Source: Mustelus asterias
Lineage: Eukaryota
Direction of reading: 5' to 3'
DNA: 64,000 nt
Assembly (NCBI RefSeq): GCF_964213995.1
Contig: NC_135808.1
Location: forward strand, 23,436,001 to 23,500,000
Numbering within the stretch: the stretch's first letter is position 1; every line of letters begins with the position of its first letter. Below the pieces are notes generated by a model. It had not been told where the DNA came from, made no database searches, and worked only from the letters and a program-made list of their open reading frames with translations. A program made the position numbers and the translations under genes. Of this stretch, positions 12,208 through 53,252 are shown one piece after another.

Positions 12208-12274
12208 AAGGGGGTGATGCCGGGACTCTCTATCTCGAGGTTCCTGTACTGACTCCTCTTTCTTTCTCTCTCAG

Positions 12275-13985: not shown

Positions 13986-14021
13986 GTATGAGGAAGTACC
14001 TGTCTGAGAGTTGCTTACTTT

Positions 14022-19770: not shown

Positions 19771-19924
19771 TTTCTGATTGTCTCTCTCGCTCTCTAATTC
19801 ACTCTCTCTCCATCATTCTCAGGTTCTCTCTCCTCTCTTCCTCTCACATTCTCTCTCTCTCTCTGATTCTCACTTTTCCCTCTCCCTGATTCACTCAGTC
19901 TCTCTGATTCTCTCTCTCTAACAG

Positions 19925-20029
19925 AACCAAAGTCTCGCTCCCAGGTTGCTGTTACTGTCGGGATTGTGGTCGGGGTCCTCATGCTCATCGCTCTCATCAT
20001 TATGGCTGTCGTCATCTACAACAAGAAAG
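19925..20029 (+). CDS. Gene A exon 5, connecting peptide + transmembrane
   Basis: taacag|, [36 protein letters not shown]|gtagga; 105 nt. Confidence 0.92.
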
Positions 20030-20254
20030 GTAGGAATTGGAGGGAAAAGAGCAGCTCCTTACTGGGGGGAGGGATTGTGGGAGAGTATTCCAGGGTGGGG
20101 GGGCTCAGGCTGTGGGTCTCAGGTTGGTGTGGGGGTCACAGAGTGGATGGAAGAGCCCAGGGTTGGGATAGGGAGGATAAGGGGCTCATGATAAAAGGGA
20201 AGAGTCTGAGAATTGTGGGAAGGGTCTCAGATTGAATGACGAGTTTAGGGTATC

Positions 20255-20641: not shown

Positions 20642-20674
20642 GGAGAGGGAAGAGTGACTACAATCCTGCAAATA
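20642..20674 (+). CDS. Gene A exon 6, cytoplasmic (GRGKSDYNPAN)
   Basis: ttttacag| ... A|gtaagc; 33 nt, phase 1; YxxA motif typical of class I tails. Confidence 0.85.
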
Positions 20675-20750: not shown

Positions 20751-21081
20751 NNNNNNNNNNNNNNNNNNNNNNNNNNNNNNNNNNNNNNNNNNNNNNNNNN
20801 NNNNNNNNNNNNNNNNNNNNNNNNNNNNNNNNNNNNNNNNNNNNNNNNNNNNNNNNNNNNNNNNNNNNNNNNNNNNNNNNNNNNNNNNNNNNNNNNNNNN
20901 NNNNNNNNNNNNNNNNNNNNNNNNNNNNNNNNNNNNNNNNNNNNNNNNNNNNNNNNNNNNNNNNNNNNNNNNNNNNNNNNNNNNNNNNNNNNNNNNNNNN
21001 NNNNNNNNNNNNNNNNNNNNNNNNNNNNNNNNNNNNNNNNNNNNNNNNNNNNNNNNNNNNNNNNNNNNNNNNNNNNNNNNN
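20751..21081. other. Assembly gap (N run) in intron 6 of gene A
   Basis: Run of N flanked by GT and CT microsatellites. Confidence 1.
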
Positions 21082-28627: not shown

Positions 28628-28991
28628 CCCGGCAACTGATGATGTTAGAATCATAGAATGAGCCCATTCAAGTCAGCACCAAATCTCAGACAGAGCATCT
28701 TTACCCAGGCCCCATCCCTGTTACCCTACATATTTACCATGGCTAATCCCCTATCACACACATCTTTAGACAGTAAGGGGCAATTTAGCTTGGCCTGTCC
28801 ATCTAACCTGCACATCTTTGGCGTGCAGGAGGAAGCAGGAGTACCAGGAGGATACCCACACAGGGAGAATGTACAAACTCCACACAGACAGTCACCCAAG
28901 GCTGAAATTGACCCTGGGTCCCTGGCGCTGTGAGGCAGCAGTGCTAACCACTGAGCAAACATAATATAACCAGTTGTATTTACCTGATTGG
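28628..28991 (+). promoter_or_regulatory. Gene B distal X-Y module split by a SINE
   Basis: X1 CCCGGCAACTGATG 28628-28641 and Y CTGATTGG 28984-28991 are now 342 bp apart. Confidence 0.85.
28646..28965 (-). mobile_element. HE1-like SINE inserted between the X and Y boxes
   Basis: tagaatcatagaa tail, reverse SINE core and head; absent in the gene A promoter. Confidence 0.88.
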
Positions 28992-29136
28992 AGAATTCTG
29001 AATATTGAGGAAGTTTGCCAACCTGTTTTGTGTCTAATCAGATTGCGGCTTCGTGTGAACAGAAAAAGACAGAAGGAACAAGTTGAGAAGATCCCCTTTC
29101 TTTGGAAAAGAGTTTCCTCCAAAGGTTTCTCCCAAC

Positions 29137-32100
29137 ATGAGGGAAGCAGCAATGATTGGACTGATAGAGCTGGTCCTTCTGTGTGGAGAGGTGTCTGCAG
29201 GTGAGTGATGGGGTGTGAGAGGGGCAATGCCAGGCTGGGTACTGGGGCATTAACCCTGGGTCAGTGAGTGATGGGGTGCGAGAGGGGCAATGTCAAGCTC
29301 GGTGGAGCTCTTGCTCTCAGTTTAGAATTCACATTTTGGGATTCATACCCTGGTGTTTCACTATGTGTGACAGTGGGTGTTTTGGGGTTCATGGCTTGAT
29401 GTCTCTCTCTGTGGTGTTGATATTTTGGGTTTGTACCTCAATTTCTGTGTGTGTGTGTGTGTATGTATGTTTTGGTGTTTGGGGGTTCACACCCTGATGT
29501 CTCTCTCTCTGGGTGTTGGTGTTTTGGGGTTCACACCCTGATGTCTCTCTCTCTCTGGGTGTTGGTGTTTTGGGGTTCACACCCTGATGTTTCTCTCTCT
29601 CTCTGGGTGTTGGTGTTTTGTGTTTCTTACCCTGAGGTCTCTCTCTCTCTGGGTGTCGGTAGGGTTCATACCCTGATGTATCTCTCTCTGTGGGTTGACG
29701 TGCCTTCAAGGAAGGTTTTTATATCATGTTTCTTGTGAAGGGAATGTTTTAAACTCAGCACTGAGCACCGTGCTGATTTGTTTGCAACCTGCAGTCTACC
29801 TGATGAGAACGCAGTAGCATAATTAATCCTAGATAATGGGTTGTTTTGTTTATCGTCTGGGTTGTCCCCTGGGGTTTCAGAGTCGGGTTTGATTCGATTG
29901 ATTTACAAGAGGAAGTCATCTGCTAATGGAAGAAGCTATTCTTACAGAGAAACAAAGCAGGCAGTTATCTGCTTCGGTCTGTCATCAGCAAGAAGTGTTA
30001 TTCTCTCTCACTCTCTCTCTTTTAGGATTATAGTTTGGGACCTGTTTGAAAATAGGTCTCTCTCCATATTTGTTCTGGGGCTTAAGGACTAGCAGTCGCT
30101 GACCAGCACATAAGCCTGTTGTTTGCTAACTGATGTTAAAGATGAGTTTACGTCTCTGAGGAATATTGCTTAAATTGGGACTAATACAGATAGACAAGCA
30201 GCAAAGAATTTGATCTTGTCTTGTTTCAGTATTTAAGTTGGTAAGATATACATCAATTCTTTTTGTTCTTGTTTAAACTGTTTTGTTCATTTTTTTAAAG
30301 CTTCCCATTGGGTCAATAGAATCACAGCTGGAGTGATTCACTTCATCCTCACACTCATGCCAAAATAAAAATAAAAATGTGGGTCTAGTCTAACTTCATA
30401 ATATAACTTGGAGTTTGAGGTCTGGTCCCTAAAAAAATTTAGGGAGTGACCGAGATCAGAGTTGAGAATTCCTTGTTCAGCTTAGGATTACTGAACTCAA
30501 AGTCAGTGAGTGTTGAGTTTTTGTGTGTTCTCTTGAGGTGAATGCCGTATGGAATAAATGGTTCTTTTACTGGCTGAGGTTTTCCTGGGTGTGGAAGAAG
30601 TGACTCAGGATGGTTTACAAAAAGTGGATAAAGCAAAACTTCTGGCATTGCCAAACAAGTTGCAGCTTTCAGTGATAGCTCGGCACTTAAAATTGCCAGA
30701 AACATTGGAATTGGCTTGAATTCAACTCCAAATCTCACAGCTTGAATTAGAGGCAAAGGAAAGAAAACACAATTGAAACTGTTGAAATTGCAATTAAAAG
30801 CAAATGAAAAAGAGTTGAGATAGTTTGAATTGTAATTTAAGGAAAAAGAAAGCGAGAGAGAATAGCCCTGGCAGAGCAAAACAAAGGGAAAAAGAATTAG
30901 AACTTCAGGAAGTGAAAAGGCAATTTGAACTTGAAATGTCTGAAAGGCAAATGTGTAAAACTGCGCGTGTATCAGGAAAAGGACAGATGATTTTGAATCA
31001 GTTTGTGAATCATATGTTGGCTTTCAACATCAGTTTCAGCCTGTGAGAGACAGAGAAATCCTCAGGTGGTAAAGGAGATGCCATTGGAGATCGTAAAGAT
31101 AGTTTCCCTCAGGTAAATTCTTTCCACTAACTGAACTTCAACTTCTTTATCTTTACTTTGTGATTTCCCCTCCTGGCCAACCTGTGGCTTTGTAAACTTG
31201 TTATCCCGCAGTCAGGAAAAAAACCCCAGGATATGCTTCCTGCATCACCTCAGCTGTCTGATTTTCCACTGGCTTTTCAACCACAGTAACCATCACTCCC
31301 ACCTGTGATCCAGCTTTATCATTACCCAGGATAAACTGTATTCCTGGAAAAGATCATTTCCCTATCACTCCAACCCCCACCACCACTTTCGCCAGAATCT
31401 CCAACCTTACACTTTATAATGGAACACTACTCTTTTCACAAGTAATTTCACTTATTTCCACATTTTTCCGGCAATACTCCTTCCAAACTACATATCTCCT
31501 CATCTTTCACCATCAAAGATTGACTTGATCCTGTACCTTTTAAAATCTGAGCTTCTTTACCTCCTCCTCCTGGTACACATAAGTAAACCTTACCCACATA
31601 AGTAAATTATTTAAAACGACTAAGCACTTGCTTATCAACCAATCCCTGACCAGGCTGGACACTTTTTCACCTGTTCAGCTTCAACTATGGTTTCCTTTAT
31701 CAGTTAACAGACCCCAGATGGTTGAGCAAGAACATAAACTGTTGGAGGATGGAGGTCACTATTTTTAGTTCAGAAAGTTGTCAGAATTACAGCAGAAGGA
31801 TATCGAAATAAAGCAATTGTATCAGAAAGCATATACAGAAGAAGAATCTGAGTGTATACCAGAGTGATACTACATTACAAATGATGAATTGATGAGATGC
31901 TGGAGATCATTACATATTCAGGCAGATGCATCAAAGTTATTCCGGGAAGTTGTGGATAGCTTAGGAGTAAAGCAATTTAAATCAACTCTGTACCATCCAG
32001 AATCGCAGGGAATATTGAAACGCGAGCGTCAAATTTTAAAGGCCATGTTGAGGACCTCCAGGCAAGATTATCCAGAGGATTAGGATAAAGGATGCACCTA

Positions 32101-35100
32101 ATGAATGAACTAAATTCAGTCTATTTGAATTAAGTTTTGTCATGAGATAAGTGGACCACTTAAATTCATCAAGGAAAAGTTGGTGAGTCAGCATTCTGGG
32201 ACTATGTTGGACTATGTGTCAAACTTTATGGAGAGATTAACTAGGGCTGGGAAGTTCATGAGACTGCAATTAAAGGTGGCACAGCATGTGAAGAAAAAAA
32301 GTGGACAAGAAAAGTTCCTCGTTTTGCTCGCAGGGATAAGGTGTTAGCATTATTAGCAGTGCTAGGTGAACATTTAACAGCTAGGTTTAGTGGGCCTTAT
32401 CAAATAGGGTGGCATGGTGGCACAGTCGTTAGCACTGCTGCCTCACAATGTCAGGAACCGGAGTTCAATTCCAGCCTCAGGTGACTGTCTGAATGGAGTT
32501 TGCACTTTTTCCCGTGTCTGCGTGAGTTTCCTCTGGGTGCTCCGGTTTCCTCCCACAGTCCAAAGGTGTACAAGAGAGGTTGATTGTCCATAATAGCTTG
32601 TCCCCTTCATGTCAGGGGGATTAGTGGGGTCGATGCAATGATGAGGTCGAGGTGGGATTGTTGTTGGTGCAGGCTCGATGGGCCAAGTGGCCTCCTTCTG
32701 CACTATAGGGCTTCAATGAAATTGAAAGAAAATTGAATAAGATGATTTTTAAAAATTCATTCATAGGACATGGGCATGGCTGCTGGCCAGCATTTATTGC
32801 CCATACCTAGTTGCCCTTGAGAAGGTGATAGTGAGCTGCCTTCTTGAATCGCTGCAGTCTATGTGCTGTAGGTTGACCCACACTGCCATTAGAGAGGCAA
32901 TTCCAGGATTTTGACACAGCGACTGTGAAGGAATGGCGATACATTTCCAAGTCACCATGGTGAGTAGCTTGGAGGGGAACTTGCAGGTGGTGGTGTTCCC
33001 ATGTAACTGCTGCCCTTGTCCTTCGAGATGGATGTGGTTGTGGGTTTGGAAGGTGCTGTCAAGGATATTTGGTGAATTGTTGCAGTGCATCTTGTAGATA
33101 GTACACACTATTGCTATTGAGCGTCAGTGGTGGAGAGAGTGGATGTTTGTGGATATGGTACCAATCAAGTGGGCTGCTCTGTCCAGGATGGTGTCAAGCT
33201 TCTTGAGTGTTGCTGGACCTCATCCCATCCAGGCAAGTGGGGAGTATTCCATCATACTCCTGATTTCTGCCTTGTAGATGGTGGGCAGACTTTGGGGAAT
33301 CAAGAGGTGAGTTACTCGTCACAGTATTCCCAGCCTCTCACCGGCTCTTGTGTTTATGTGGCGAGTCCAGTTGAGTTTCTAGTCAATAGTAATGCCAAGG
33401 ATGTTGACAGTGGGGGATTCAGTAATGGTAACACCATTGAATGTCAAGGGGTGGTTGTTAGAGTGTCTCTTATTCATGATGATAATTGCCTGACATTTGT
33501 GTTGCTCGAATGTTACTTGCCACTTGTCAGCCGAAGCTTGGATATTGTCCAGATCTTGTTGCATTTGAACATGGACTGCTTCAGTATATGTGGAGTCATG
33601 AGTGGTACTGAAAATTGTGCAATCGTCAGCAAACATCCCCACTTCTGACCTGATGATGGGGGGAAGATCATTGATGAAGGAGTTGAAGATGGTTGGGCTG
33701 ACGACACTACCCCAAGGGATTCATAAGAACATAAGAACCAGGAGCAGGAGTAGGCATCTGGCCACTCGAGCCTGCTCTGCCATTCAATAAGATCATGGGT
33801 GATCTTCTCGTAGACTCAGCTCCACTTAGCCGCCAGCTCACCATAACCCTTAATTCCTTTACTGTTCAAAAATGTATCTATCCTTGCCTTAAAAACATTC
33901 AATGAGGTAGCCTCAACTGCTTCACTGAGCAGGGAATTCCACAGATTCAAACCCATTGTGTGAAGAAGTTCCTCCTCAATTCAGTCCGAAATCTGCTTCC
34001 CCTTATTTTGAGGCTATGCCCCCTCATTCTTGTTTCACCCGCCAGTGGAAAAAACTTCCCTGCTTCTATCTTATCTATTCCCTTCATAATCTTATATGTT
34101 TCCTTCAGATCTCCCCTCATTCTTCTGAATTCCAATGAGTATAGCCCCAGTCTACTCAGTCGCTCCTCAAAAGCCAACCCTCTCAACTCTGCAATCAACC
34201 CTAGTGAATCTCCTCTGCAACCCCTCCAGTGCCAATATATCCTTTCTCAAGTCAGGAGACCAAAACTGTACACAGTACTCCAGGTGTGGCCTCACCAGCA
34301 CCTTATACAGCTGCAACATCACCTCGCTGTTTTTCAACTCCAATAAAGGACAACATTCCATTTGCCTTATTAATTACCTGCTCCACCTACAAACCAACTC
34401 CTTGAAATTCTGCACAAGGACACCCAGGTCCCTCTGCACAGCAGCATGCTACAATTTTTTACCATTTAAATAATAGTCCATTTTGCTGTTATTCCTACCA
34501 AAATGGATGACTTCCCATTTACCAACACTATACTCCATCTGCCAAACCCTCGCCCACTCACTTAGCCTATCTATATCCCTTTGCAGACTTTCAGCGTCCT
34601 CTGCACACTTTGCTCTGCCACTCATCTTAGTGTCATCTGTGAATTTTGACACACTACACTTAGTCCCCAACTCCAAATCATCTCTGTAAATTGTAAACAA
34701 TTGCGGTCCCAACACTGAACCATGAGGCACACCACTAGTCACTGATCGCCAACCAGAAAAACACCAATTTACCCTCACTCTTTGCTTTCTGTTAGTTAAC
34801 CAATCCTCTATCCATGCTAGTACATTACCCGTAATACCGTGCACCTTTATCTTGTGTAGCAGTCTTTGGTGGGTCACCTTGTCAAATGCCTTCTGGAAAT
34901 CCAGATACACCACGTCCACAGGTTCCCCATTGTTCATTCCTGCACAGATGTCCTGGAGCTGAGATGACTGACCCTCCACAATCACATTCCTATGTGCCAG
35001 GTATGACTCCAACCAGCGGAGAGTTTGCCACCTGATACCCATTGATTTCAGTTTCGCTAGAGTTCCTTGATGCCACACTTGGCCGAATGTGGCCTTGATA

Positions 35101-38100
35101 TCAAGGGCTGTCACTTTCACCTCACCTCTGGAATTCAGCTATTTTGTCCATGTTTGAACCAAGGCTGTAATGAGGTCAGGAGCTGAGTGACCCTGGTGAA
35201 ACCCAAACTGGGCGTCACTGAGCAGGTTATCATTAAGCAGGTGCTGCTTGATAGTACCCGTGGAGAATTATATGACAAGAACGTTGGATCGAAGGAAATC
35301 TCACAGAGTGTTTCCTGAGAATATACTCAAGCAATATTTTGATCGGGAAGGAAAGCAGAAGGGGGATGCATTAGTTATGACAATGCAGAGTGAAGAAATA
35401 AGTCCAGATGATTCTGCATTTGACATTCTTCAAATTAGATTGGATAATGTGGAAGTAATCGGAAATTGAAATAAACGATTGAGTTACCTTCTGGAGGAAA
35501 ATCAAAATGGCCTGAAAGAGTTACTACAACCACAGGGAGAGATATGTGGGAATAAACTGGGAAGGACTAAAATAATTATGCACAACGTAGATGTAAGAAA
35601 TGCTGTTCCAATTAAGCAATATCTGTACAAGCTTAACCCTCCAAAGTTGGCATAGGTTCAAAAGGAGATTGAAAGCATATTTAAAAATTACATAATTGAA
35701 GTGAGTTGGAGAGAGTGCAGCTCACCCGTAGTGAGGGTTCCAAAATGAGATGACACCCAACAATTCTGTGTGGACTATAGGAAAGTTAATGCAGTTACAA
35801 AATAAGATTCATATCCCATTCCTTTCTTGGGAGACTGCATTCAGAAGGTGGGACAAGTGACTTTTATTTCCAAACTTGACTTACTAAAAGGATACTGGCG
35901 GGTACCTTTATCCGAAAGGGCAAAGGAGATTTTGGCTTTCATGACAAAAAATGGTCAGTACCAGTTTAAAATCATGCCATTTGAAATGAAAAATGCACGA
36001 GCCACATTTCAAACATTAACTAATAAGGTCATTTCTGGACTACCTAATTGTGCTGTGTACATAAACAAACTGGTGGTTTTCAGACAGATGTGGAAGGAAC
36101 ATTTGGAGCACCGAGCGGAATTGTTCAATTGGCTTCAGGATGCAGGCTTGGTGGTAAACTTGGCTAAGAACGAGTTTACAAAAACCAAAGTCACATTCAT
36201 AGTCCATACAATTAGACATGGATGGAAGGCCCTACGGTCGGTGAAAACAAAGGTTATTGGGGAGTGCCCAATACTGCCGGTGAAAAGTGAAGTACTGCAT
36301 TCTTGGACCTGGATGGTTTTTATAGGAATTTTGTGCCAAACATTTGCATTATGGTTGCTGCACTGACTGACTTGCTGAAAAAACATGCAAAATTTCAGTG
36401 GACGGTGAATGTCAGAGGGCATTTGGCCGCCTGAATAATGTGTTAACCACTGCACCTGTGTTGGCAAGAACAAATTATGCAAAACCATTCAAGATGGCCA
36501 TTGATGCGAGTGATGTGGCTGTTCTATTACAAGAAGATGACAAAAGGATATAAAGACCAATTGGGTACTTTTTTCTGGAAAACGAAATAACCATCAAAAG
36601 AGATTCAACCATTGAGAAAAGAAACATTGAGTTTGGTGTTGGCATTGCAACATTTTAACGTTTATGTTGTCAGCAATTCATCTGAGACAGTTATTTACAC
36701 TGATCATAATCCATTGACGTCTCTGGAGAAATTTAGAGATCAAAGTGAAAGGCTCTTTAGATGGAGTTTATTATTACAGCCATTTTATATGAGAATTACA
36801 ATGTGGCAGAAAGTGAGAATGTGATTGCTGATGCTTCATCAACAATTTCATGAAAGAGGAAGGAATATTCAATGTCGGAAGAGAATGACTGTACTGGACA
36901 ATAGAACTATTATACTTGCATGCATTGATTTACTAGAATGTGTATATTTTATATATATATATATATATATATGTAGTACTAATAGTGTGAAACTTGAAGT
37001 TATGAAAAATGAAGCCATTTTTTATTGCTGTTTTTTTTAAGGGGGAGGTGTGAGGATACTGTGCCTTTAAGAAATGTATCTATATCATGTTTCTTGTGAA
37101 GGGATTGTTTTCAACTTCAGCTCTGATTACAGTGCCGATTTGCCCACAAACAGCAGCCCACATGCTGAGAGTGCAGAAGCATAATTTATCCCAGATAATG
37201 TTTCTTTTTGCTTTTATCTGAGCTGTTTTGTTTATTTTTTTGGGTTGTCCCTGGGGTTTCAGAGTAAGGTTTAATTCGGTTGATTGACAAGAGGAAGTTA
37301 TATGCTGATGGGAAGAGCTAAGCTTACAGGAAGACAAGCAGACAGTTGTCTGCCTGGACCTGCCAGAAGCATTATTCTCTCTCTCTTTCTCTAAAGACTG
37401 TAGTTTGGGACCTGCTCGAAAATAGGTCTCTCTCCAGAGGTGTTTTGGAGGCTGGAGATACCCAGCTCAGATACCCACATGTAAGGCTGTTTGCTGACTG
37501 ATTTTCAGGAGGTGTTTATGTCTATGAGGAATATTGCTTAAATTGGAACAATTAGAAATAATCCAGCAGTTAAGAGTTGTATCTTGTCACATGTAAGAAT
37601 TTCAGTTGGTAAAAGTTGAGGCTATTTCTTTTTGTTATAGTTAAACTGTACTGTTAAATAAAGTTTGTTTTGACAAAAGCTTCCTAGTGGGTCATTGGAA
37701 TGACACCTCGAGTGAAACACTTTATCCTCACACGAATGTCAAAGTCAAAAAAGAGAGTTGGGGTCTGGTCTAAATTCATAACATGGAGTTTCTAATCTGG
37801 TGCCCAACGGTGGATGCTGGTGTTTTGTGTTCATACCTTGATCTCTCTCTGTTTTTCAGGTTCTCACTCTCTCCGGATTTCCGTCACGGGAATGACTCCG
37901 ATCCCGGGTTTCCCGGAGTTTGTGCTTGTCGGTTATGTGGATGATCTCCGGGTTGTTGTGTACGACAGCGATCGGAAGGAGCTGATCCCCCAGGAGCAGA
38001 GGATGGTGGAGATCGACGGACATGAGGCTTGGGAACAGAAGAAGATTCTCGCACAAGAGCTGGGGATGATTGTCAAATTGTCTTTTCCGGTCTTCATTTC

Positions 38101-41100
38101 TCTGTCCCAGCAGACAGGAAGTGAGTCCTCACTTTCCCACCACTCGGGGGTGCAGGTGGGAAGAAACCAAGAATGGATCAGGAACTGGGAGCCAGAGGCT
38201 GATTGGCTACGATTGGATATGTGACAGCAAATTTGATTGGCGATCAATGAGTGGAGGGAATGTATCCAAGAGAGACTGGCTCGGATTGGCTGTGTGTGGA
38301 GGACATGAGATCCACTTAGTGTAACTGCCGCTGATTGGCTTTCTATGTGGTGGGAGGTGCCTCGCTTGATTTGATTGGCTCTTGATAGAGTGGGTCTGGC
38401 TTCTGAGTGGAACTAGCTTGGATTGGCTGTGGGGGTGGTATCTCACATTGGGACTGACTCTAATTGGCTGTTTGTGATCCACAGGAATCCATGTTTTACA
38501 GATGATGACTGGCTGCAATCTGAGGGATGATGGGACCACGAGTGCATTCAACCGGATTGGGTGGAATGGACAGGATGTGCTCAGCTTCGACAAGGATCAC
38601 ATGGTGTGGGTGACCCCAGTGACCTGGGGAGAGATCATCAAAAACAATCTTGACAGGGATACTGCCCAGAATGAGCGATTCAAACAATTACTGGAGGTGG
38701 ACTGTATTGAGTGGCTGAGGAAATCCCTCGAGTTCGGACAGAGTGAACTGACAGCTGGTGAGTGAGGGGGGAGCGAGAATTGGTGAGTGATGGGGGGAGC
38801 GAGAGTCGGTGAGTGAGGGGGGGAGTGAGAGTCGGTGAGTGAGGGGGGAGTGAGAGTCGGTGAGTGAGGGGGGAGCGAGAGTCGGTGAGTGAGGGGGGGA
38901 GCGAGAGTCGGTGAGTGAGGGGGAGCGAGAGTCGGTGAGTGAGGGGGGAGCGAGAGTTGGTGAGTGAGGGGGGAGCGAGAGTCGGTGAGTGAGGAGGGAG
39001 CGGGAATCAGTGGGTCAGGGTGAGTGAGGGGGGAGTGAGTGGGAATCAGTGGGTGAGGTGGGAGTGAGTGGGAATCGGTGGGTGAGTGAGAGGGGGGTGG
39101 GAATCAGTGGGTGAGGGGGACTGAGTCATTGAGTGACGCGTGACAGATAGAGAGAAAGGTAGAAAACACCGAGTGCATTTTGCAGAAAGCTGGAGGGAGA
39201 TACTTATTTTCTATCAGCTCCCAGACTGCAATTTCCAGACAGAGAAAGGGAGAGAGAAAGAGCTGCTCCTTCGTTTTTCAAATTGAAACAGCAACTGCCT
39301 GCCTGTCCCTCTGTAACCCAAACTGCTCCCATTGACATGATTTCATTCTTGCCAATCAACCTAATTACACCCGACTCTGAAACACCAGGAGAAAACCACA
39401 ACATTTCACAAAACTGCATTAGCTCAGATTAAAACAAACACCCCAATACTTAGGACCAATTACTCTTCCGCATTATGTTGTGAAGTTTATGTTTTTAAAA
39501 TGATAACACAATTGTAACAATTGGAGTTTTCTAAACAGCATTCCATTGGAATCGTGCTTTATTCGGTTTGTTAATTGTTTTGTTAACCTGATTGCTGTTA
39601 GTTAGATAAATAAAGTGTTACTTGTTGCTTTACAGAGGGAATCTCAGGTAGTTATTTTGATTTGACCACTAAAAGTTGCTGAAGAGCAGATATTAACCCT
39701 TCTCACACACACTTTAACAGATTATGAAGGGACGTAATGCTCTTTCAGTGGCTGAGTATCAGTTCTCAGAGAGGAAATCAACTTCCACTTCGTAACAATT
39801 ATCAGCATGTGGGCTGCTGCAGTAATCAGAGTTGACATATAAAACAGTCCCTTTAGAAGAAATGCAAATACATTCCTTAAAAGCACAGTTCTGACACAGG
39901 GGACTTAGAGTGAGTGAGGGAGGGAGGGAGTGAGATTCGGTGAGTGAAGGAGGTGAGAGAGCCGGTGAGTGAGGGGGGGGAGTGAGAGTTGGTGAGAGAG
40001 GGGGGAGCGAGAGTCGGTGAGTGAGGGGGGAGTGAGAGTCGGTGAGTGAGCGGGAGTGAGAGTCGGTGAGTGAGGGGGGAGTGAGAGTCGGTGAGTGAGG
40101 GGGGAGTGAGAGTCGGTGAGTGGGGAGGGGAGTGGGACTCTCACTCCCGCTCACTCACCGACTCTCACTCCTCCCTAACTCACCCACTCTCACTCCCCCC
40201 TCACTCAACGACTCTCACTCCCCCCTCACTCACCGACTCTCACTCCCCCCTCTCTCACCGACTCTCACTCCCCCCCCTCACTCACCGGCTCTCTCGCCTC
40301 CTTCACTCACTGAATCTCACTTCCTCCCTCCCTCACTCACTCTAAGTCCCCTGTGTCAGAACTGTGCTTTTAAGCAATGTATTTGCATTTCTTCTAAAGG
40401 GACTGTTTTATGTGTCAACTCTGATTACTGAGGGGAGGAGTGAGCATCGGTGAGTGAGGGGGGAGTGAGAGTCGGTGAGCGAGGGGGGAGTGAGAGTCGG
40501 TGAGCGAGGGGGGAGTGAGAGTCGGTGAGTGAGGGGGGAGTGAGAGTCGGTGAGTGAGGGGGGGAGTGAGAGTCGGTGAGAGAGGGTGGAGTGAGCGTCG
40601 GTGAGTGAGGGGGGAGTGAGAGTCGGTGAGTGAGGGTGGAGTGAGAGTCGGTGAGCGAGGGGGGAGTGAGAGTCGGTGAGTGAGGGGGGAGTGAGAGTCG
40701 GTGAGTGAGGGGGGAGTGAGAGTCGGTGAGTGAGGGGGGGAGTAAGAGTCAGTGAGTGAGGGGGGTAGTGAGAGTCGGTGAGAGAGGGTGGAGTGAGAGT
40801 CGGTGAGTGAGGGGGGAGTGAGAGTCGGTGAGTGAGGGGGGGAGTGAGAGTCGGTGAGAGAGGGTGGAGTGAGAGTCGGTGAGTGAGGGGGAATGAGAGT
40901 CGGTGAGTGAGGGGGGAGTGGGTGTCGGAGGGTGAGGGGGGAGTGAGAGTCGGTGAGTGAGGGGGGAGTGAGAGTCGGTGAGTGAGCGGGGAGTGAGAGT
41001 CGGTGAGTGAAGGGGGAGGGAGGGTCGGTGAGTGAGGGGGGAGTGAGAGTTGGTGAGTGAGGGGTGGAGTGAGAGTTCGTGATTGAGGGGGGAGTGAGAG

Positions 41101-44100
41101 TCGGTGAGTGAGGGGGAACTGAGTCGTTGTGCGAATGTGAGTGAGGGGGGAGTGGGAGTCGGTGAGTGAGGGGGAACTGAGTCGTTGTGCGAATGTGAGT
41201 GAGGGGGGAGTGAGAGTCGGTTAGTGAGGGGGGAGTAGGAATCAGTGGGTGAGGGAGGAGTGAGTGGGAATCGGTGAGTGAGGGGGGAGTGAGAGTCGGT
41301 GAGTGAGGAGGGAGTGAGAGTCGGTGAGTGAGGCGGGAGTGAAAGTCGGTGAGTGAGGCAGGAGTGAGATTCGGTGAGGGTGGAGGTATTGGGAATCAGT
41401 GGGTGAGTGAGGAGTGAGTGGGAATCGGTGAGTGAGGGGGGAGTGAGAGTCGGTGAATGAGGGGGGAGTGAGAGTCGGTGAGTGAGGGGGGAGTGAGAGT
41501 CGGTGAGTGAGGGGGAATGAGAGTCGGTGAGTGAGGGGGGAGTGGGAGTCGGAGGGTGAGGGGGAGTGAGAGTCGGTGACTGAGGGGGGAGTGAGAGTCG
41601 GTGAGTGAGGGGGGAGTGAGAGTCGGTGAGTGAGCGGGGAGTGAGAGTCGGTGAGTGAAGGGGGAGGGAGGGTCGGTGAGTGAGGGGGAAGTGAGAGTCG
41701 GTGAGTGAGGGGCGGAGTGAGAGTTGGTGATTGAGGGCGGAGTGGGAGTCGGTGAGTGAGGGGGGAGTGAGAGTCGGTGAGTGAGGGGGAACTGAGTCGT
41801 CGTGCGAATGTGAGTGAGGGGGGAGTGAGAGTCGGTGAGTGAGGGGGGAGTGAGAGTCGGTGAGTGAGGGGGGAGTGAGAGTCGGTGAGTGAGGAGTGAA
41901 TGAGAATCGGTTAGTGAGGTGGGAGTAGGAATCAGTGGGTGAGGGAGGAGTGAGTGGGAATCGGTGAGTGAGGGGGGAGTGAGAGTCGGTGAGTGAGGAG
42001 GGAGTGAGTGTCGGTGAGTGAGGCGGGAGTGAGATTCGGTGAGGGTGGAGGTAGTGGGAATCAGTGGGTGAGGGGGGAGCGAGAGTGGGTGAGTGAGGGG
42101 GGAGCGAGAGTGGGTGAGTGAGGGGGGAGCGAGAGTTGGTGAGTGAGGAGGGAGCGAGAGTCGGTGAGTGAGGAGGGAGCGGGAATCAGTGGGTCAGGGT
42201 GAGTGAGGGGGGAGTGAGTGGGAATCAGTGGGTGAGGTGGGAGTGAGTGGAAATCGGTGGGTGAGTGAGAGGGGGGTGGGAATCAGTGGGTGAGGGGGAC
42301 TGAGTCATTGAGTGACGCGTGACAGATAGAGAGAAAGGTAGAAAACACCGAGTGCATTTTGCAGAAAGCTGGAGGGAGATACTTATTTTCTATCAGCTTC
42401 CAGACTGCAATTTCCAGACAGAGAAAGGGAGAGAGAAAAGAGCTGCTCCTTCCTTTTTCAAATTGAAACAGCAACTGCCTGCCTGTCCCTCTGTAACCCA
42501 AACTGCTCCCATTGACATGATTTCCTTCTTGCCAATCAACCTAATTACACCCGACTCTGAAACACCAGGAGAAAACCACAACATTTCCCAAAACTGCATT
42601 CGCTGAGTTTAAAACAAACACCCCAATAATTAGGAGCAATGATTCTTCCGCATTATATTGTGAAGTTTATGTTTTTAAAATGATAACACAATTGTAAAAA
42701 TGCTCGGAGCAGAAGGCATTGCATGGGCTGTTTAAAAAAAGGTTTTTATTTCTGTACTGAAGAGTAGGCTGTACACTGCTGTACACTGTACATTGTATCA
42801 TGAGCCTGGGCAGTAACTTTAAACAATCAGTTTAAATTAGGGATTTGAATAGCAGCAGCCTCTCAGATTTGAATTTGATGTTTTGATAACTAGTGGTAAA
42901 CCAATCCTATTGTGGGGATTTTTGATATGTCATCAGGGGTATAAAAGCCACACTCCTGCCTCTGCCAGCAAATGCATCTGCCACGGTTTACAGCTTGAGA
43001 GAGAGAGGGAGAGAGAGACAGACAGCAACTGTCTCTAACAGAGTGACAGCCACATTTATGTCTTAAAAGAAAGCCTCATCTCAAGCGTAAAGGTACAAAC
43101 GGAAGTTAGTGGAAACAGAAGATAAAGACAGAGCATTCCGGAAGATGACAAAACTGGTTAAAATTTTGAGAGTGACTAGAAATTCAAATTGTTTTGTAAA
43201 AAATGGGAATTGGATTTATCTAAAGAGCATTCCATTGGAATCGTGCTTTATTCGGTTTGTTAATTGTTTAGTTAACCTGATTGCTGTTAGTTAGATAAAT
43301 ATTGTGTTACTTGTTGCTTTACAGAGGGAATCTCAGGTAGTTATTTTGATTTGATCACTAAAAGTTGCTGAAGTGCAGATATTAAACCTTCTCACACACA
43401 TTTTAACAGATTATGAAGGGACGTAATGCTCTTTCAGTGGCTGAGTATCAGTTCTCAGAGAGGAGATCAACTTCCACTTCGTAACAATCATCAGCATGTG
43501 GGTTGCTGCAGTCATCAGAGTTGACATATAAAACAGTCCCTTTAGAAGAAATACAAATACATTCCTTAAAGGCACAGTTCTGACACGGGACTTAGAGTGA
43601 GTGAGGGAGGGAAGGAGGGAGAGTCGGTGAGTGAGGGGGGAGTGAGAGTGGGTGAGTGAGGGGGGAGTGAGGGGGGCGTGAGAGTCGGTGAGTGAGGGGG
43701 GCGTGGGAGTCGGTGAGTGAGGGCGCGTGAGAGTCGGTGAGTGAGGGGGGAGTGAGAGTCGGTGAGTGAGGGGGGAGTGAGAGTCAGTGAGTGAGGGGGG
43801 AGTGAGAGTCGTGAGTGAGGGGGGAGTGAGAGTCGTTGAGTGAGGGGTGAGTGAGAGTGGGTGAGTGAGAGTGGGTGAGTGAGGGAGGAGTGAGAGTCTT
43901 TGAGTGAGGGGGGAGTGAGAGTCTTTGAGTGAGGGGGGAGTGAGAGTCGGTGAGTGAGGGGGGAGTGAGAGTCGGTGAGTGAGGGGGGAGTGAGAGTCGG
44001 TGAGTGAGGGGGGAGTGAGAGTGGGTGTGTGAGCGGGGAGTGAGAGTCGGTGAGTGAGTGGGGGAGTGAGAGTCGGTGAAGGGGGTGATGCCGGGACCCT

Positions 44101-47100
44101 CCATCTCGAGGTTCCTGTACTGACTCCTCTTTCTTTCTCTCTCAGTTGCCCCGATCGTGTCCTTTACCCGTCTGGGTGATTCTAACCAGCTGTCCTGTGC
44201 CGTCACTGGGTTTTACCCTCAAGCCATCGAGGTGAATCTGTGGAGAGATGAAGTGGTGATTGATGAGACTCTGTCCAGTGGGATCTTACCCAATCACGAC
44301 AGCACCTACCAGATCCGGAAATGGGCAGAGTTTGATCCAGAGGACCAGGCCGAGTATTCCTGTCGGGTGGAACACAGCGGGATGAATGAGACACTGGTGG
44401 TGATTTACGGTAAGACTATTTCTCACTGTTCGAGAGGACCCAGCCTCAGACCAGGGTCACAGGAGGGAGGGTCAGTGCTGAGCTGTCAGCCCAGGACAGC
44501 CTGAGGCCCAGTATAGAGCAAGAAGGAAATAAATATTAATCTTCAATGCATTACATCATCATGGTGTCACCATTAAAGGAAAGTGATTGTGTGTCCTGGG
44601 ATTTTACTGTGCAATCTGCCCCAGTGTATCCTGCGATATTATAGCATGACAGGGCCCGGTGCATTGTGGCAAATAACAGGAAGTGCAGGACCCATTGCAT
44701 TGTTGAATATTATAGTAGGAAAGGGCGCCTGTGGATCATGAGATATTACTGTGTGACAGGCCAGTGTATCCTGAGATATTACAGTATTACAGGGCCAGTG
44801 TATCCTGGGATATTACAGTATGACAGGGCCAGTGTATCCTGGGATATTCCAGTATGACAAGGCCAGTGTATCCTGGGATATTACAGTATTACAGGGCCAG
44901 TCTATCCTGGGATATTACAGAATGACAAGGCCAGTGTATCCTGGGATAGTACAATCTTACAGGGCCACTGTATCCTGGGATATTACAGTATTACAGGGCC
45001 AGTGTATCCTGGGATATTACAATATTACAGGGCCAGTGTATCCTGGGATATTACAGTATTACAGTGTCACTGTATCCTGGGATATTACAGTATTACAGGG
45101 CCAGTGTATCCTGGGATATTATAGTGTGACAGGGCCAGTGTATCCTGGGCTATTACAGTATTACAGGGCCAGTGTATCCTGGGATATTACAGTATGACAG
45201 GGCCAGTGTATCCTGGGATATTACAGTATGACAGGGCCGAGTGTATCCTGGGATATTACAGTATTACAGGGCCAGTGTATCCTGGGATATTACAGTATGA
45301 CAGGGCCAGTGTATCCTGGGCTATTACAGTATAAAGTTTAACAACACCAGGTTAAAGTCCAACAGGTTTATTTGGTAGCTTTTGCTACCAAATAAACCTG
45401 TTGGACTTTAACCTGGTGTTGTTAAACTTCTTACTGTGTTTACCCCAGTCCAACGCCGGCATTTCCACACTATTACAGTATTACAGGGCCAGTGTATCCT
45501 GGGATATTACAGTATGACAGGGCCAGTGTATCCTGGGATATTACAGTATGACAGGGCCAGTGTATCCTGGGATATTACAGTATGACAGGGCCAGTGTATC
45601 CTGGGATATTACAGTATTACAGGGCCAGTGTATCCTGGGATATTACAGTATGACAGGGCCGAGTGTATCCTGGGATATTACAGTATTACAGGGCCAGTGT
45701 ATCCTGGGATATTACAGTATGACAGGGCCAGTGTATCCTGGGATATTACAGTATTACAGGACCTAGTGTATTCTGGATGTTTACTCCAGTCAACTTCGGA
45801 TGAATGTTCAGAAAAATACTGGAACTCTGTCTATTGGAGAGAATTCATGAAAATCTAGAAAGTCTATTTGGACTTCAGTAAGGCCTTTGATAAATTTCTA
45901 TATGGCAGGCTGCTCTGGAAGGTGAGATCACATGGAATCCAGGGAGAGCTGGCAAATTGCTGATGTAATTGTCGTGATGATAGGAAGGAGAAGGTAATGG
46001 TGGAAGGGTGCTTGTCGGACTGGATGCCTGTGACTAGTGTATGCCCCAGGGGTCGGTGCTGGGCCCATTGCTGTTTGTTATCTATATCAACAATTTGGAT
46101 GAGAATGTACAAGGCATGATCAGTAAGTTTGCAGAAGACACTAAAGTAGGTGGTATTTTAGGCAGTGAGGAAGCTTGTCAAAAATTGGAGCAGGATCTTG
46201 ATCAGCTGGAGAAATGGGCCGAGAAATGGCAAATGGAGTTCAACACAGATGAGTGTGAGCTGTTGCATTTTGGAAAGTCAAATCAAGCTCAGACTTTAAC
46301 AGTGAATTGTAGGACCTTAGGGAGTTTCGTTGAACTTAGGGACCTTGGAGTTCAGGTGCACAGTTCTCTGAAAGTGGAGTCACAGGTAGATAGGGCAGTG
46401 AAGAAGCCTTTTGGCACGCTGGCCTTCAGTCAAGTCACTGAGTATAGAAGTTGGGAAGTTATGTTGCAGTTGCACAGGACGTTGGTGAGGCCGCACTTGG
46501 AGTATTGTGTTCAGTTTTGGTCGCCCTGCTACAGGAAATATGTTATTAAACTCGAAAGAGTACAGAAGAGATTTACAAGGATGTTGCCAGGACTGAAGGG
46601 ACTGTGTTGTAGGGAGAGATTGGACATGCGAGGACTTTTTTCCTTTGGAGCGTAGGAGACTAAGGGGTGATCTTGTAGAGGTATATAATAAGATCATGAG
46701 GGACATGGATAGGGTGAATGCACTCAGTCTTTTTCCCAGGGTTGGGGAATCGAGAACTCGAGAGCATAGGTTTATGTTAAGAGGGGAAAAAATTAATGGA
46801 AACCTGAGGAGCAACTGTTTTACACAGAGAATGGTACATATGTGCAAAGAGCTGCCGGAGGAAGTGGTTGAAGCAGGGACATTGACAACATTTAAAAGGC
46901 ATTTGGACAGATACATGGATCTGAAAGGTTTAGGGGGATATGGGTCAAATACAGGCAAATGGAGTTAAGTTAGATGGATATTTTGGTCGGCTAGGGCCAG
47001 TTTCGGCCAAAGGGCCTGCCTCTGTTCCGTAGATTCTATGAAAGCAAAAAATATGAGAGTTGTGATAACCCCCAGCACCTACAAGGGGAATCCCTGATTG

Positions 47101-50100
47101 ACCCCCCAGTCAGACTCATGGGAATCTGAGTTCCAGTGGTGATAGGCAATTGCCTAACCAGGTGGAACTCGTATCCAGAGCCCTTGATAAGTCAATCCCT
47201 TGAGCGTGTCCGGTGTTCTATCATCCTGGATGGGACTCATGTACATGGACCACAAAGTTGTGTTTTAACTTTTACTTTGACAAATACAATATCGAATGAT
47301 GAAAATGTGAGCTGGAAACTATGTTTGGCAGCCTGGTACAGATGGGGACATAGAGGAACTGGTTCAAACATGCAAAGCTTGCCAGGATAACCAGGGGGCC
47401 CCACCAGTAGCCTCTCTGTTCTCCTGGGAATGGCCGGGAAGTCCTTGGATTGTGCAGGGCCATTTATGGGCTCAATGTTTCTGATATTGATTGATGCCCA
47501 CCCGAAGTAGATTGGTCTACACCGGGTGGCTTTTACCACTTCATATAACACCATAGAAAAGCTCGGGCAGTCTTTCAGTACGCATGAGATACCAGAGGTC
47601 CTCGTAACAGGCAATGGGACCCGTTTACCAGTGAAGAGTTCAAAACATTCATGACCACAAATGGAGTAAGACATGTCTGCACAGCCCCATATCACCTCTC
47701 ATTGAATGGCTTCACAGGGCGAGCAGTCCAAGTAGAATCATAGAACCTTAGAAACCCTACAATGCAGAAAGAGGCCATCTGGCCCATTGAGTCTGCACCG
47801 ACCACAATCCCACCCAGGCCCTACCCCCATATCCCTACACATTTACCCGCTAATCCCTCTAACCTACGCATCTCAGGACACTAAGGGGCAATTTTAGCAT
47901 GGCCAGTCAACCTAACCCGCAGATCTTTGGGTTCAAAAGCAGTTCAAAAAAGTGTTCAAAAGCAGCATGAAAAAAACAAACTCAGGGCTCCTTGGGCACA
48001 AAGTTGGTACAGTTCATTTTAACTCCAGGGCAACCCTGTACATAATGACGGGTTTCGCCCCAGCAGAATTCCTGATGGGCACACGCCTGCGGGATCAGGC
48101 TGAGCCTCACTTTCCTGAATCTAAGTGTAAAAATTGAGGAGAAACAAAAAGCACAAAATATGGGCCAAGGGGGGGCATTCGCCTGATTGGAATTTTAAAC
48201 CAGGAGACACCGTCCACGTGCAAAACTTTGGAGATAGCACCCAATGGACACCACGGGTTCCTCCCTCAAGGATCGGCCCAGTGTTATACACTGTAAAAAC
48301 TGAAGACAAGATAGTAAGGAAACATATTGACCCTCTGACGCCGTCCGAAACGTTCGACAGAAGCAACTGGCACATCGAACGTGCCATCTTCGGCACCGTG
48401 CACATCGACTGGCAGCAAAGAAACTCAACCAACGCTTGGCTTCAAAACAGCTGGGGAGGACTCGGCCTTAGAAATGGAAATTGAGGCAGCGGAATCTCAG
48501 CCAGAGGTTGTTGTGGAGAGTGAGCCACCTGCAGTGACACTTCGGCGGTCATCAAGAAAGAGACGGTCGCCGACTCGATGGACCTCTCCTGACCAGGTGG
48601 AGGATGCAATGGAAAGAAAGCCATTGGTCAAAGGATGAAGATGTTCTTGACATCTCAGGAGTGAGGGAGAGCCCTCAGGCATGGAGGTGGAGGGATGTGA
48701 TAACCCCGAGTACCTACAAAGGGAATCCCTGGTTGACCTCCCAGTAAGACTCATGGGATACGAGTGCCTGGGTGATTGGCAATTGCCTAACCAGGTGGAA
48801 CCCGTATCCAGAGCCCTTGATAAGGCGGTCCCCTGAGCGTCCGGTATTCTATCATCCAAATGGAACTCATGTACACGTACCACAGGGTTGTGTTTTAATT
48901 TTACTTTGACAAACAAAACATTGTTCCTTTCCAGTCGGCTTCCTGAGTTATTACAATAATGAATAGTCAGCATGGATCTTGAAATGGAGAGTCTTGTTTT
49001 ACTCCACTTAGTGGATTTTTTGAGGATGTAACAGGTGATGATAATGTAGTAGATATAATTTAATATGATTTTTTCAATGTAATAGATAAGGTGACTGGTG
49101 ATAGACTAATGGATAAGGTCAGAGAATGTGGAGTTAGGGAAAAGTGACAGAATGGATTGCTCACTGACTTTGAGACAGAAAGCAGAGAGTGTGAGTAAAG
49201 GGAGTTATTCAGAGTTACAGACAGTGGGAAATGGTGTCCCACAAGGATCAGTGCTCGGCTCACCACTGTTTACAATTTACACTCAATGATTTGGTTATTG
49301 GAACCAAGAACACCATGGGTAGAATTTTACGACCTCATAATGCCCATTTTTCAGCATGAAGATGTACTAAATTGGGGAGTGAGCTGACTGGTGGGAATAG
49401 TGCCCCTTTTCCCATCCATTCCTACCTGACCAAAAGAGAATGGGTGAAAATGGGTCAATTTGCATTTTTGTGCATTCATCACAATGTAACAAGCGAGCTT
49501 CAGTGTTGTCCTGGGAACCACGCAAGACAGGCAATAGCTGGCCCACCTGAAAGCTTTGGGACTCCTCCCAACAGCCTCACAGTTGGTCCAGTGTTGCTGT
49601 CAGCCCTTCCTGCATTCCCTGGCTCAGTTGCTGCATCTCCAGCAGCGGGGATTTGGTCATTAGGCACAGCGGTTAGCGCTGCTGCCTCTGTCATGATAGG
49701 GTTGGCAGGGGAGAGGGTCATGTCACTTGGCAATTAGGGGCAGGGGGTGATGAGGGGATCATGTGCAAGGGGGTGTAAGGAGGGTAAGGCAGTTGGAAAA
49801 TTGGGCAGAGTCCCTGATGTCCGTGGCGGGGAGGGTGAGGCTGTATCTGGCCGGGGGAAGGGTCGGGGGGGGCGGGGGGGGGAGTTGTGGCAGGGTAACG
49901 GCTGCCTTTTTCGCCTTTTCTGCGAATGTGCAGTTTGTGGCTCCGATCTGAGCTGCAGGCTGTCTGTCGGGTTATGCCCCAACCACTGCCTCTTTTGGAT
50001 AGAAACAGTCTAGCCCATATTGTCAATATTTACGTCTGTAAGATTGGGAGTGAAAACACGCTCAAAGAAATGGTTCAGGCACTCTCTCGTTTTCACGCCA

Positions 50101-51687: not shown

Positions 51688-51914
51688 CAGCTCCTCACTG
51701 GGGGGAGGGATTGTGGGAGAGTATTCCAGGTGGGGGTGGCTCAGGCTGTGGGACTCAGGTTGGTGTGGAGGAGGTCACAGAGTGGGTGGGAGAGCCGCAG
51801 GGTTGGGATAGGGAGGGTGAGGGGCTCAAGAAAAAGGGGGAGAGTTTGAGAATTCTGGGTTCTCATGTTGGATGAGGAGTTGAGGGCATCAGTGAGAGTC
51901 CCGGATCCCTGCAG

Positions 51915-53252
51915 GAGTGAGGGGCTCAGGTCAGTGTGGGAGTGGGGGACTCGGGTCAGTGTGGGAGTGGGGGACTCGGGTCAGTGTGGGAGTGGGGGAC
52001 TCGGGTCAGTATGGGAGTGGGGGGCTCGGGTCAGTGTGGGAGTGGAGGACTCGGGTCAGTGTGGGAGTGGGGGACTCGGGTCAGTGTGGGAGTGGGGGAC
52101 TCGGGTCAGTGTGGGAGTGGGGGACTCGGGTCAGTGTGGGAGTGGGGGACTCGGGTCAGTGTGGGAGTGGGGGACTCGGGTCAGTGTGGGAGTGGGGGAC
52201 TCGGGTCAGTGTGGGAGTGGGGGACTCGGGTCAGTGTGGGAGTGGGGGACTCGGGTCAGTGTGGGAGTGGGGGACTCGGGTCAGTGTGGGAGTGGGGGAC
52301 TCGGGTCAGTGTGGGAGTGGGGGACTCGGGTCAGTGTGGGAGTGGGGGTCTCGGGTCAGTGCGGGAGTGAGGGGCTCGGGTCAGTGCGGGAGTGAGGGGC
52401 TCGGGTCAGTGTGGGAGTGGGGGACTCGGGTCAGTGTGGGAGTGGGGGGCTCGGGTCAGTGTGGGAGTGAGGGGCTCAGGTCAGTGTGGGAGTGAGGGGC
52501 TCAGGTCAGTGTGGGAGTGAGGGGCTCAGGTCAGTGTGGGAGTGAGGGACTGGGGTCAGTGTGGGAGTGGGGGACTCGGGTCAGTGTGGGAGTTGGGGAC
52601 TCGGGTCAGTGTGGGAGTTGGGGACTCGGGTCAGTGTGGGAGTGAGGGGCTCAGGTCAGTGTGGGAGTGAGGGACTGGGGTCAGTGTGGGAGTGGAGGAC
52701 TCGGGTCAGTGTGGGAGTGAGGGGGCTCGGGTCAGTGTGGGAGGGGGGACTCGGGTCAGTGTGGGAGGGGGGACTGGGGTCAGTGTGGGAGTGGGGGACT
52801 GGGGTCAGTGTGGGAGTGGGGGACTGGGGTCAGTGTGGGAGTGGGGGACTGGGGTCAGTGTGGGAGTGGGGGACTCGGGTCAGTGTGGGAGTGGGGGACT
52901 CGGGTCAGTGTGGGAGGGGGGACTGGGGTCAGTGTGGGAGTGGGGGACTGGGGTCAGTGTGGGAGTGGGGGGCTCGGGTCAGTGCGGGAGTGGGGGGCTC
53001 GGGTCAGTGTGGGAGTGGGGGGCTCGGGTCAGTGCGGGAGTGGGGGACTGGGGTCAGTGTGGGAGTGGGGGACTCGGGTCAGTGTGGGAGTGGGGGACTC
53101 GGGTCAGTGTGGGAGTGAGGGGCTCGGGTGCGTGTGGGAGTGAGGGGTTTGGGTCAGTGTGGGAGTGAGGGGCTCGGGTCAGTGTGGGAGTGAGGGACTG
53201 GGGTCAGTGTGGGAGTGAGGGGTTTGGGTGAGTGTGGGAGTGAGGGACTCGT
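51915..53252 (+). repeat. 25-bp G-rich minisatellite (gtgggagtgggggactcgggtcagt)
   Basis: About 50 tandem units, three G-tracts per unit. Confidence 0.96.

Follow-up and report, generated by a model that had tools for sequence, protein, structure and literature searches.

Sharks are the oldest lineage with a major histocompatibility complex (MHC), and a class I molecule of the chicken, YF1, binds lipid. In elasmobranchs, Almeida et al. 2021 reportedly found hydrophobic residues in UEA and UCA at the nine positions that anchor peptide termini. In PMC12562908, sharks are described as carrying two expanded class Ib families, UBA (with reference to Bartl et al. 1997) and UEA, of which UBA is derived from UAA, and XNC10 is named as a proposed CD1 analogue. 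PMC10751288 places UBA in a multicopy cluster of its own, between c4 and rxrb and away from the class Ia region, and the two sources describe UFA and UGA as CD1-like, MHC-linked class Ib molecules of elasmobranchs with apolar binding regions, said to bind CD1d-type lipids (PMC10751288, PMC12562908). Here we analyse a stretch of 64,000 nucleotides from Mustelus asterias (NCBI RefSeq assembly GCF_964213995.1, contig NC_135808.1, positions 23,436,001 to 23,500,000 of the forward strand), called the window below and used for all coordinates, which holds two tandem class I genes, A then B, both on the + strand. An earlier note on this DNA had singled out gene B as a candidate molecule for hydrophobic or lipid ligands. 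Our comparisons of sequence show it as one copy of a sublineage, called B-type here, of a multicopy non-classical class I family of sharks, with a predicted groove that is very apolar and is unable to hold peptide termini in the usual way; its function as a binder of hydrophobic ligands is much less certain than its family identity.

The groove of gene B is encoded by an alpha1 exon (37860-38120, + strand) and an alpha2 exon (38485-38757, +), which contain 86 (37862-38119) and 90 (38487-38756) stop-free codons and are flanked by acceptors and GT donors; the corresponding exons of gene A are of equal length (10612-10869, 86 codons; 11203-11472, 90 codons), and Pfam MHC_I matches both groove exons in both genes. 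For gene B, the expectation value (E) of the MHC_I match was 2e-08 in alpha1, where only residues 1-66 of 86 were aligned, and 3.3e-16 in alpha2, and the closest solved chain found by HMMER was the nurse-shark class I molecule 6LUP (E 5e-14 for alpha1 and 1.9e-26 for alpha2). An intact alpha3 exon (44146-44409, +; C1-set E 6e-15) and a connecting-peptide/transmembrane exon (51560-51687, +) follow, and this plan of phase-1 exons, with alpha1-alpha2 MHC_I, C1-set alpha3 and a transmembrane segment, is that of a class I heavy chain. Cys101 and Cys164 are retained in alpha2, and the alpha3 cysteines are invariant across alignments A5 and A6, that is, the alpha3 disulphide is retained as well. All four exons are open, giving about 960 coding bases without stop or frameshift, and their splice sites are good except for the donor of the transmembrane exon. 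Translation and alignment thus agree with the earlier note, in which alpha1 and alpha2 were described as stop-free, of normal length and with their cysteine pair in place.

When the alpha2 exon was compared with 1.84 billion representative sequences and two further searches were made, the matches led to the NCBI protein models of M. asterias, and gene B proved to be modelled there already (P0213/P0294). Its alpha1 and alpha2 exons are 100% identical to residues 19-104 and 106-195 of P0213, its alpha3 exon is a 100% match to the same model, and P0294 fits the transmembrane exon of the window. The 90% cluster of P0213 adds P0293, P0294 and P0295; these four models are 89-100% identical overall and identical through alpha1-alpha3, and may represent separate loci or models of one locus. 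P0214 is a diverged second B-type gene, open throughout and 84% identical to gene B in alpha1 and 82% in alpha2 (83% over alpha1-alpha2). One chromosome carries more than 20 class I models of M. asterias, and two class I genes are in the window. Gene B itself was searched exon by exon, and the full-length protein that was aligned and folded was NCBI's own model.

For family-wide comparison, 101 rows were chosen from 292 proteins (single-gene elasmobranch models and three outgroups), and P0043 was dropped for a fill below 80%, leaving 100 rows; fused multi-gene models (e.g. P0001-P0003, P0155, P0206-P0209), short fragments and most non-elasmobranch matches were left out. The nine positions that bind peptide termini (7, 59, 84, 123, 143, 146, 147, 159 and 171, in HLA-A2 numbering) were set by HMMER alignments and a MAFFT alignment of these 100 rows. 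Gene B reads I7, A59, L84, V123, I143, N146, L147, L159 and S171, keeping none of the nine. At the same positions gene A has Y, S, R, F, I, K, W, Y and Y, as does its NCBI model P0203; seven are thus kept, with Y59 and T143 already gone. The 100-row alignment therefore bears out the earlier count of nine changes in gene B and of seven residues kept in gene A. In P0214 (A59, L84, Q86, N119, L123, I143, N146, F147, L159, F171) none of the eight readable anchors is kept. Over the 100 rows the number kept ranged from 0 to 9: the only other protein with none came from Pristis (0/9), one protein each from Stegostoma and Hemitrygon kept a single anchor (1/8 readable in both), and other Mustelus members of the family keep 3, 5, 6, 7 or 8. 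Judged from these alignments, anchor loss is a continuum in the clade of gene B, with the B-type at its extreme.

The same groove appears strongly apolar. Mean Kyte-Doolittle hydropathy was calculated over 37 groove positions, taken from a list of HLA-A2 pocket residues, with offsets set by hand, and not from coordinates, and on this basis gene B scored 2.02 (rank 1 of 100) and P0214 scored 1.69 (rank 2), with gene A's type at rank 32 and the Triakis alleles at ranks 60-79. The F pocket of gene B (S77, V80, F81, L84, L95, I116, V123, I143, N146, L147) had a hydropathy of 2.73, the highest among the rows listed, and the predicted groove is lined with aliphatic residues, in the F pocket above all. 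AlphaFold2, run on P0294 with a 79-row family alignment, returned a standard class I heavy chain with a mean predicted local distance difference test (pLDDT) score of 87.1 and block means of 85-96 over alpha1-alpha2 (residues 21-200); the predicted alpha1 helix is unbroken at residues 72-100 despite its proline. The top Foldseek match of this model was 6LUP (E 4.3e-35), followed by MR1 and by class I chains of fish and birds, with no CD1 chain among the matches listed. The combination of 0/9 anchors and first rank in hydropathy supports the proposal, already made from the letters alone, that the groove of gene B would be very apolar and could not hold peptide termini in the canonical way.

The alpha1 helix and the N86 glycosylation site were examined in the same comparisons. 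The helix strings quoted in the earlier note match, and so does the change of the N86 sequon from NQS to QQT, which P0214 shares. The helix of gene B keeps the register of the family helix, with charged and polar residues replaced in place, and when its 33 residues were compared among 305 proteins, the best matches after the B-type were ordinary Mustelus members of the family in the same register; the helix is therefore not a patch from another lineage among these proteins. A foreign alpha1 helix introduced by gene conversion was accordingly rejected for the 305 proteins compared, in which UEA, UFA and UGA types could not be identified. At the end of alpha3 (44380-44409), both B-type genes read NET in place of the KET of the other Mustelus copies in alignment A5; this new alpha3 N-glycosylation sequon is found in the same genes that lost N86 and is absent from the nine non-B-type rows of A5.

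The lineage of gene B was inferred from quick maximum-likelihood trees of 178 alpha1-alpha2 columns, with support from the Shimodaira-Hasegawa-like approximate likelihood-ratio test (SH-aLRT) only. P0213 and P0214 form a pair (SH-aLRT 99) on a long stem (0.42), inside a 49-row clade (SH-aLRT 99) that also contains O19480_HETFR and O19479_GINCI, which we take to be the non-classical clones of Bartl et al. 1997, as well as other copies from Mustelus and from catsharks, bullhead sharks, carpet sharks and mackerel sharks. The UAA sequences of Triakis, Ginglymostoma (6LUP) and Heterodontus (O19481_HETFR) fall outside, and gene B does not cluster with the UAA references. Taken domain by domain, as the earlier note had envisaged, the placement held for alpha2 (48-row clade, 99), and the alpha1 tree was unresolved with the same nearest neighbours. 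Genes A and B are read as members of UBA, a label taken partly from the cited descriptions and partly from the identity of the two reference clones, and we consider the identity of gene B within this family very probable. As to map position, the window contains no single-copy gene flanking the two class I genes. The earlier view of gene B as a duplicate of a peptide-type class I gene is not supported by this placement: gene A lies in the same non-classical clade, lacks Y59 and T143 and has a broken alpha3, and is therefore no peptide-type reference.

A search with residues 19-196 of P0294 gave 44 proteins at E<=1e-20 out of 156 candidates, and only the P0213 cluster and P0214 exceeded 65% identity. 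The lack of an orthologue outside Mustelus in this search may simply mean that the collection contains no other proteome of a hound shark or requiem shark. On the proteins sampled, the B-type is so far a Mustelus-only sublineage that appears to carry the anchor-loss trend of its family to its end. The gene falls in a clade read as UBA, and no description of the B-type lineage was found in the literature searches made; the supplementary gene lists and UBA maps of PMC10751288 could bear on both label and novelty. Since apolar grooves have been reported for UFA and UGA, class Ib molecules of this kind are already known in elasmobranchs, and it is the B-type lineage itself that is new.

Whether these changes reflect selection or decay was addressed by codon comparisons. 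Between genes A and B, the 37 groove codons had a rate of nonsynonymous substitution (dN) of 0.74 and of synonymous substitution (dS) of 0.20, a ratio of 3.79 (Fisher p 0.007), against a dN/dS of 0.42 (p 0.0014) in the other 139 codons, where alpha2 gave 0.24 and alpha1 0.95; this contrast sums both lineages and is common for any two class I paralogues. Between P0213 and P0214, 15 of 34 groove positions differ and 14 of 134 elsewhere (p 2.5e-05), a groove-biased pattern that resembles other working-looking pairs of the family. Among columns conserved at 90% or more, gene B has changed 7 of 69 (62/69 kept) and P0214 4 of 65, compared with a median of 4.3% and with 10% in a classical Chiloscyllium protein. 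Synonymous divergence between A and B is a mosaic. The two leaders do not differ, and dS amounts to 0.10 over the first 60 codons of alpha1, 0.38 over the last 26, 0.69 in alpha2 and 0.05 in alpha3; intron 2 of the two genes gave no detectable match by blastn. On these values the core that codes for the groove is old and the ends are homogenised.

Variants of the B-type also occur in other sequencing runs. In the alpha1 helix, a contig from run X3 (37982-38363), from another individual, has eight listed changes, which are non-synonymous without exception and spread over five codons (I>C, L>M, S>F, F>I, V>S), with none listed in its 243 intron bases; it is either an allele or a further paralogue. 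In the first strand, a contig from run X1 (37700-38475) carries L>F, S>F and V>A. The residues that had been flagged as possible signs of decay separate into three cases: W51>R is private to gene B, with P0214 keeping W; D119>N is common to gene B, P0214 and six further rows of the 100; and the helix proline occurs across the whole shark family, so that this point falls away. The pattern as a whole argues that selection reshaped and diversified the groove while the scaffold stayed conserved, and it fits selection better than decay, although present-day function of the copy in the window is a separate claim.

We assign a probability of roughly 0.45 to gene B being a working presenter of a hydrophobic ligand. 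Its scaffold has been kept (62/69 columns, both disulphides, a class I fold predicted with confidence) while all nine terminus residues were lost, and groove positions have changed far faster than silent sites, with the rest of the domain constrained and the B-type paralogues differing mainly in the groove. The gene would make, or would have made until recently, a membrane protein associated with beta2-microglobulin and ending in an 11-residue tail. This product could not present conventional 8-10-mer peptides; its ligand would most likely be hydrophobic, whether the tail of a lipid or a peptide of very apolar character, and may be shown to an innate-like T-cell receptor or one of natural killer (NK) type. 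Remodelling of the groove would have taken place independently of CD1, as in chicken YF1*7.1.

The same residues could also belong to a protein that functions without presenting lipid, having a groove that is narrowed or closed and free of ligand, in which case the molecule would serve receptors as their ligand or resemble a chaperone, or that takes unusual peptides, long or very hydrophobic, without anchored termini. Ligand-free class I-like proteins exist, with MIC, HFE, FcRn and T10/T22 as models, and the loss of the nine terminus anchors rules out canonical binding only. Bulky apolar residues occupy pocket positions (L70, I73, F81, L84, I116, L147, F156, L159), the places below 6LUP in the structure search are taken by MR1 and by class I chains that bind peptide, with no CD1 among the matches listed, and there is no endosomal sorting tail. 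However, the groove differs strongly between the B-type paralogues (15/34) and in the X3 contig, and such variability between copies is more expected of a ligand-contacting surface than of a closed groove; the predicted helices are also regular. We regard this explanation as rather unlikely.

Several observations weigh against a working presenter, including the derivation of the groove positions from a pocket list and not from coordinates and the summed A-B contrast given above. Most of them would follow if gene B were a silent or dying duplicate, that is, a once-working non-classical gene drifting to a pseudogene like gene A, in which case past function would explain the selection signals. 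Upstream, a promoter-like stretch (approximately 28950-29136, +) was recognised by alignment with its gene A counterpart, the homology (10132-10413 in A against 29022-29303 in B) amounting to 91.8% identity by blastn. This stretch keeps one CTGATTGG box, CCAATCAG reads CTAATCAG, about 66 bases holding the second module of gene A are absent, and a CCAAT box has been lost by mutation to CTAAT. The leader exon (29137-29200, +; 64 nt, with a GT donor at 29201) is an exact copy of gene A 10247-10310 and encodes the family signal peptide, as in P0004 and P0203, in a phase that fits alpha1; as read from the sequence, this canonical leader is intact and in phase, its use in mRNA being only predicted. 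It lies 8.6 kb upstream across retroelements, at the far end of an intron 1 (29201-37859, +) whose counterpart in gene A measures 300 bp and in which homology between A and B resumes only about 50 bases before gene B alpha1. That intron contains reverse-transcriptase-like open reading frames (ORFs) at 33379-35120 (-) and 35827-36824 (+), named by sequence motifs alone. The first exon in the NCBI models (36513-36567, +), located by tblastn and by an exact peptide match to residues 1-19 of P0294/P0293, lies inside a retroelement, and its 19 retroelement-derived residues have no signal-peptide character.

The 3' end of gene B is equally unusual. At the ancestral donor site of the transmembrane exon (51665-51666), GC stands in place of GT, and read-through adds eight further codons before a TAG (51685-51687), giving a predicted tail of 11 residues without a Y-x-x-hydrophobic motif; P0213 and P0294 end in this same read-through tail, and no copy of the two cytoplasmic exons of gene A was found elsewhere in the window. 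In the P0214 model, too, the leader is missing and the sequence stops just past the transmembrane exon, a hint that these odd ends may predate the divergence of the two B-type genes. The NCBI isoform P0293 of a B-type gene is predicted to join alpha3 to an exon inside intron 4 (48432-48635), with a tail of acidic and basic residues in place of the transmembrane segment; the product may be soluble or aberrant.

Further points on the side of a silent or dying copy come from residues, neighbours and sequencing data. Of the 100 rows, 97 have N at position 86, with gene B and P0214 (Q) and P0231 (G) as the exceptions, and W51R, R48Q and a G>A change fall at conserved columns. The dN/dS of 0.95 for alpha1 outside the groove belongs on this side too, and the four near-identical B-type copies are too recent for a test of constraint. 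The neighbouring gene A is a pseudogene, and the cluster therefore sheds genes. Fourteen sequencing runs are listed for the locus and 0/14 are on record as RNA; of the four examined, X1, X3 and X4 gave contigs that cross an intron without joints and are therefore genomic DNA, and X13 gave nothing. These signs of decay have to be set against the roughly 960 coding bases without stop or frameshift, the other NCBI B-type models that are also open, the 62/69 conserved columns retained and the leader exon that is intact and in phase. P0214 in particular, although 17% diverged, is open, shares the derived residues and has its differences concentrated in the groove, and long introns and short tails alone do not stop expression. 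On balance, we consider a silent or dying copy unlikely, and the presentation of a hydrophobic ligand remains our preferred reading of gene B.

A bolder form of this preferred reading, which we regard as improbable, is that a hound-shark branch of UBA re-invented a lipid-type or other non-peptide groove and then diversified it among paralogues or alleles, yielding a polymorphic, multicopy, tail-less presenter of hydrophobic ligands independent of CD1, UFA/UGA and YF1. If true, the switch from peptide to apolar ligand would be easy and recurrent, caught here beside close relatives in the same cluster that keep 7, 5 and 3 of the nine anchors. The frequency and speed of such groove switching matter for the question of how CD1-like presentation and innate-like T cells originated. 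Within a single species, the genes of the cluster form a graded series keeping 8, 7, 6, 5, 3 and 0 of the nine anchors, ending in the most apolar groove among the 100 elasmobranch and outgroup sequences, which makes a stepwise route testable. Should gene B prove silent, it would simply add another case of birth-and-death turnover to those of a known non-classical family.

Gene A, which served as the comparison copy, has its leader at 10247-10310 (+), alpha1 at 10610-10870 (+; 100% identical in P0203), alpha2 at 11201-11473 (+; 98.9% identical in P0203) and alpha3 at 12275-12537 (+). Alignment with gene B alpha3 revealed that the frame of this last exon is broken by a 1-bp deletion after 12436, with a TGA at 12444-12446 in the displaced frame, and P0203 ends in the shifted alpha3 frame; the break is also present in a slightly different copy. 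The broken copy in the window is thus gene A, the one keeping 7/9 anchors. Its transmembrane exon lies near 19924-20040 (+) and its cytoplasmic exons at 20642-20674 and from 21385 (+), with a run of N at 20751-21081 between the two.

Repeats are prominent around both genes. Intron 3 of each contains a tandem array whose unit of about 25 bases repeats a splice-donor motif (GGTGAGTGAGGGGGGAGTGAGAGTC), occupying 11474-12210 in gene A (about 0.7 kb) and 38758-39125 and 39900-44079 in gene B (several kb). Another array of about 25-base units lies 3' of the gene B transmembrane exon (51900-53250; about 1.3 kb, against about 0.3 kb in gene A), yields long open frames in which a GSGGLGSVWEWGTRVSVGVGDSGQC-like unit recurs; homology between A and B stops within this array. 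Four to five copies of the 3' end of intron 1, made up of a polypyrimidine tract and a GGTGTTGGTGTTTTGGGGTTCA unit, follow the gene B leader at 29389-29740 and precede the retroelement block. Reverse-transcriptase-like ORFs of up to 341 aa, named by sequence motifs alone, also occur between and after the class I genes at 14011-15021 (+), 46041-46968 (+), 54078-55103 (-) and 59840-61885 (+).

Compared with known systems, gene B shares with CD1 a class I-like heavy chain, a hydrophobic groove and the lack of peptide-terminus anchors. It shows no specific affinity to CD1 in sequence or fold, however, scoring 59.8 bits with Pfam MHC_I against 32 bits with MHC_I_3, and its tail has no tyrosine-based sorting motif. 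Kinship of gene B with CD1 was rejected on the grounds that MHC_I outscores MHC_I_3 and that no CD1 chain appears among the structure matches listed. Because the B-type is nested in a UAA-derived shark clade and no CD1 chain is among those matches, the apolar groove of the B-type is read as having arisen independently of CD1, in keeping with what the earlier note had put forward as possible. Chicken YF1*7.1 (3P73/3P77) and Xenopus XNC10, considered here as functional analogues, resemble it in that a groove has turned apolar among ordinary class I genes, but 3P73 is only an average match to gene B (E 3.3e-07 and 1.7e-12) and the resemblance would be convergent at most.

Within elasmobranchs, the likeness to UFA, UGA, UEA and UCA, with which gene B was compared by description only, consists in being MHC-linked class Ib with apolar binding regions; in those descriptions they are ancient lineages of their own, with UFA and UGA at single or low copy number, whereas the B-type is a young branch inside the UAA-derived family. 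Classical UAA (6LUP and the Triakis scyllium alleles) has the same fold, exon plan and disulphides, and 6LUP is the best match in the PDB, but UAA keeps 8-9 of the nine anchors and N86, ranks 20-100 of 100 in groove hydropathy and falls outside the clade of the B-type. The closest system is UBA, inside whose clade gene B lies with 61% identity to O19480 in alpha1-alpha2, having in common with it the leader, the sequences of alpha3 and of the transmembrane segment, the proline in the helix, A/S59, I143 and multicopy organisation on one chromosome. The sampled UBA members keep between 0 and 8 of the nine anchors and the B-type keeps none, and peculiar to the B-type are the most apolar groove, the loss of N86, the new alpha3 sequon and a gene without tail exons.

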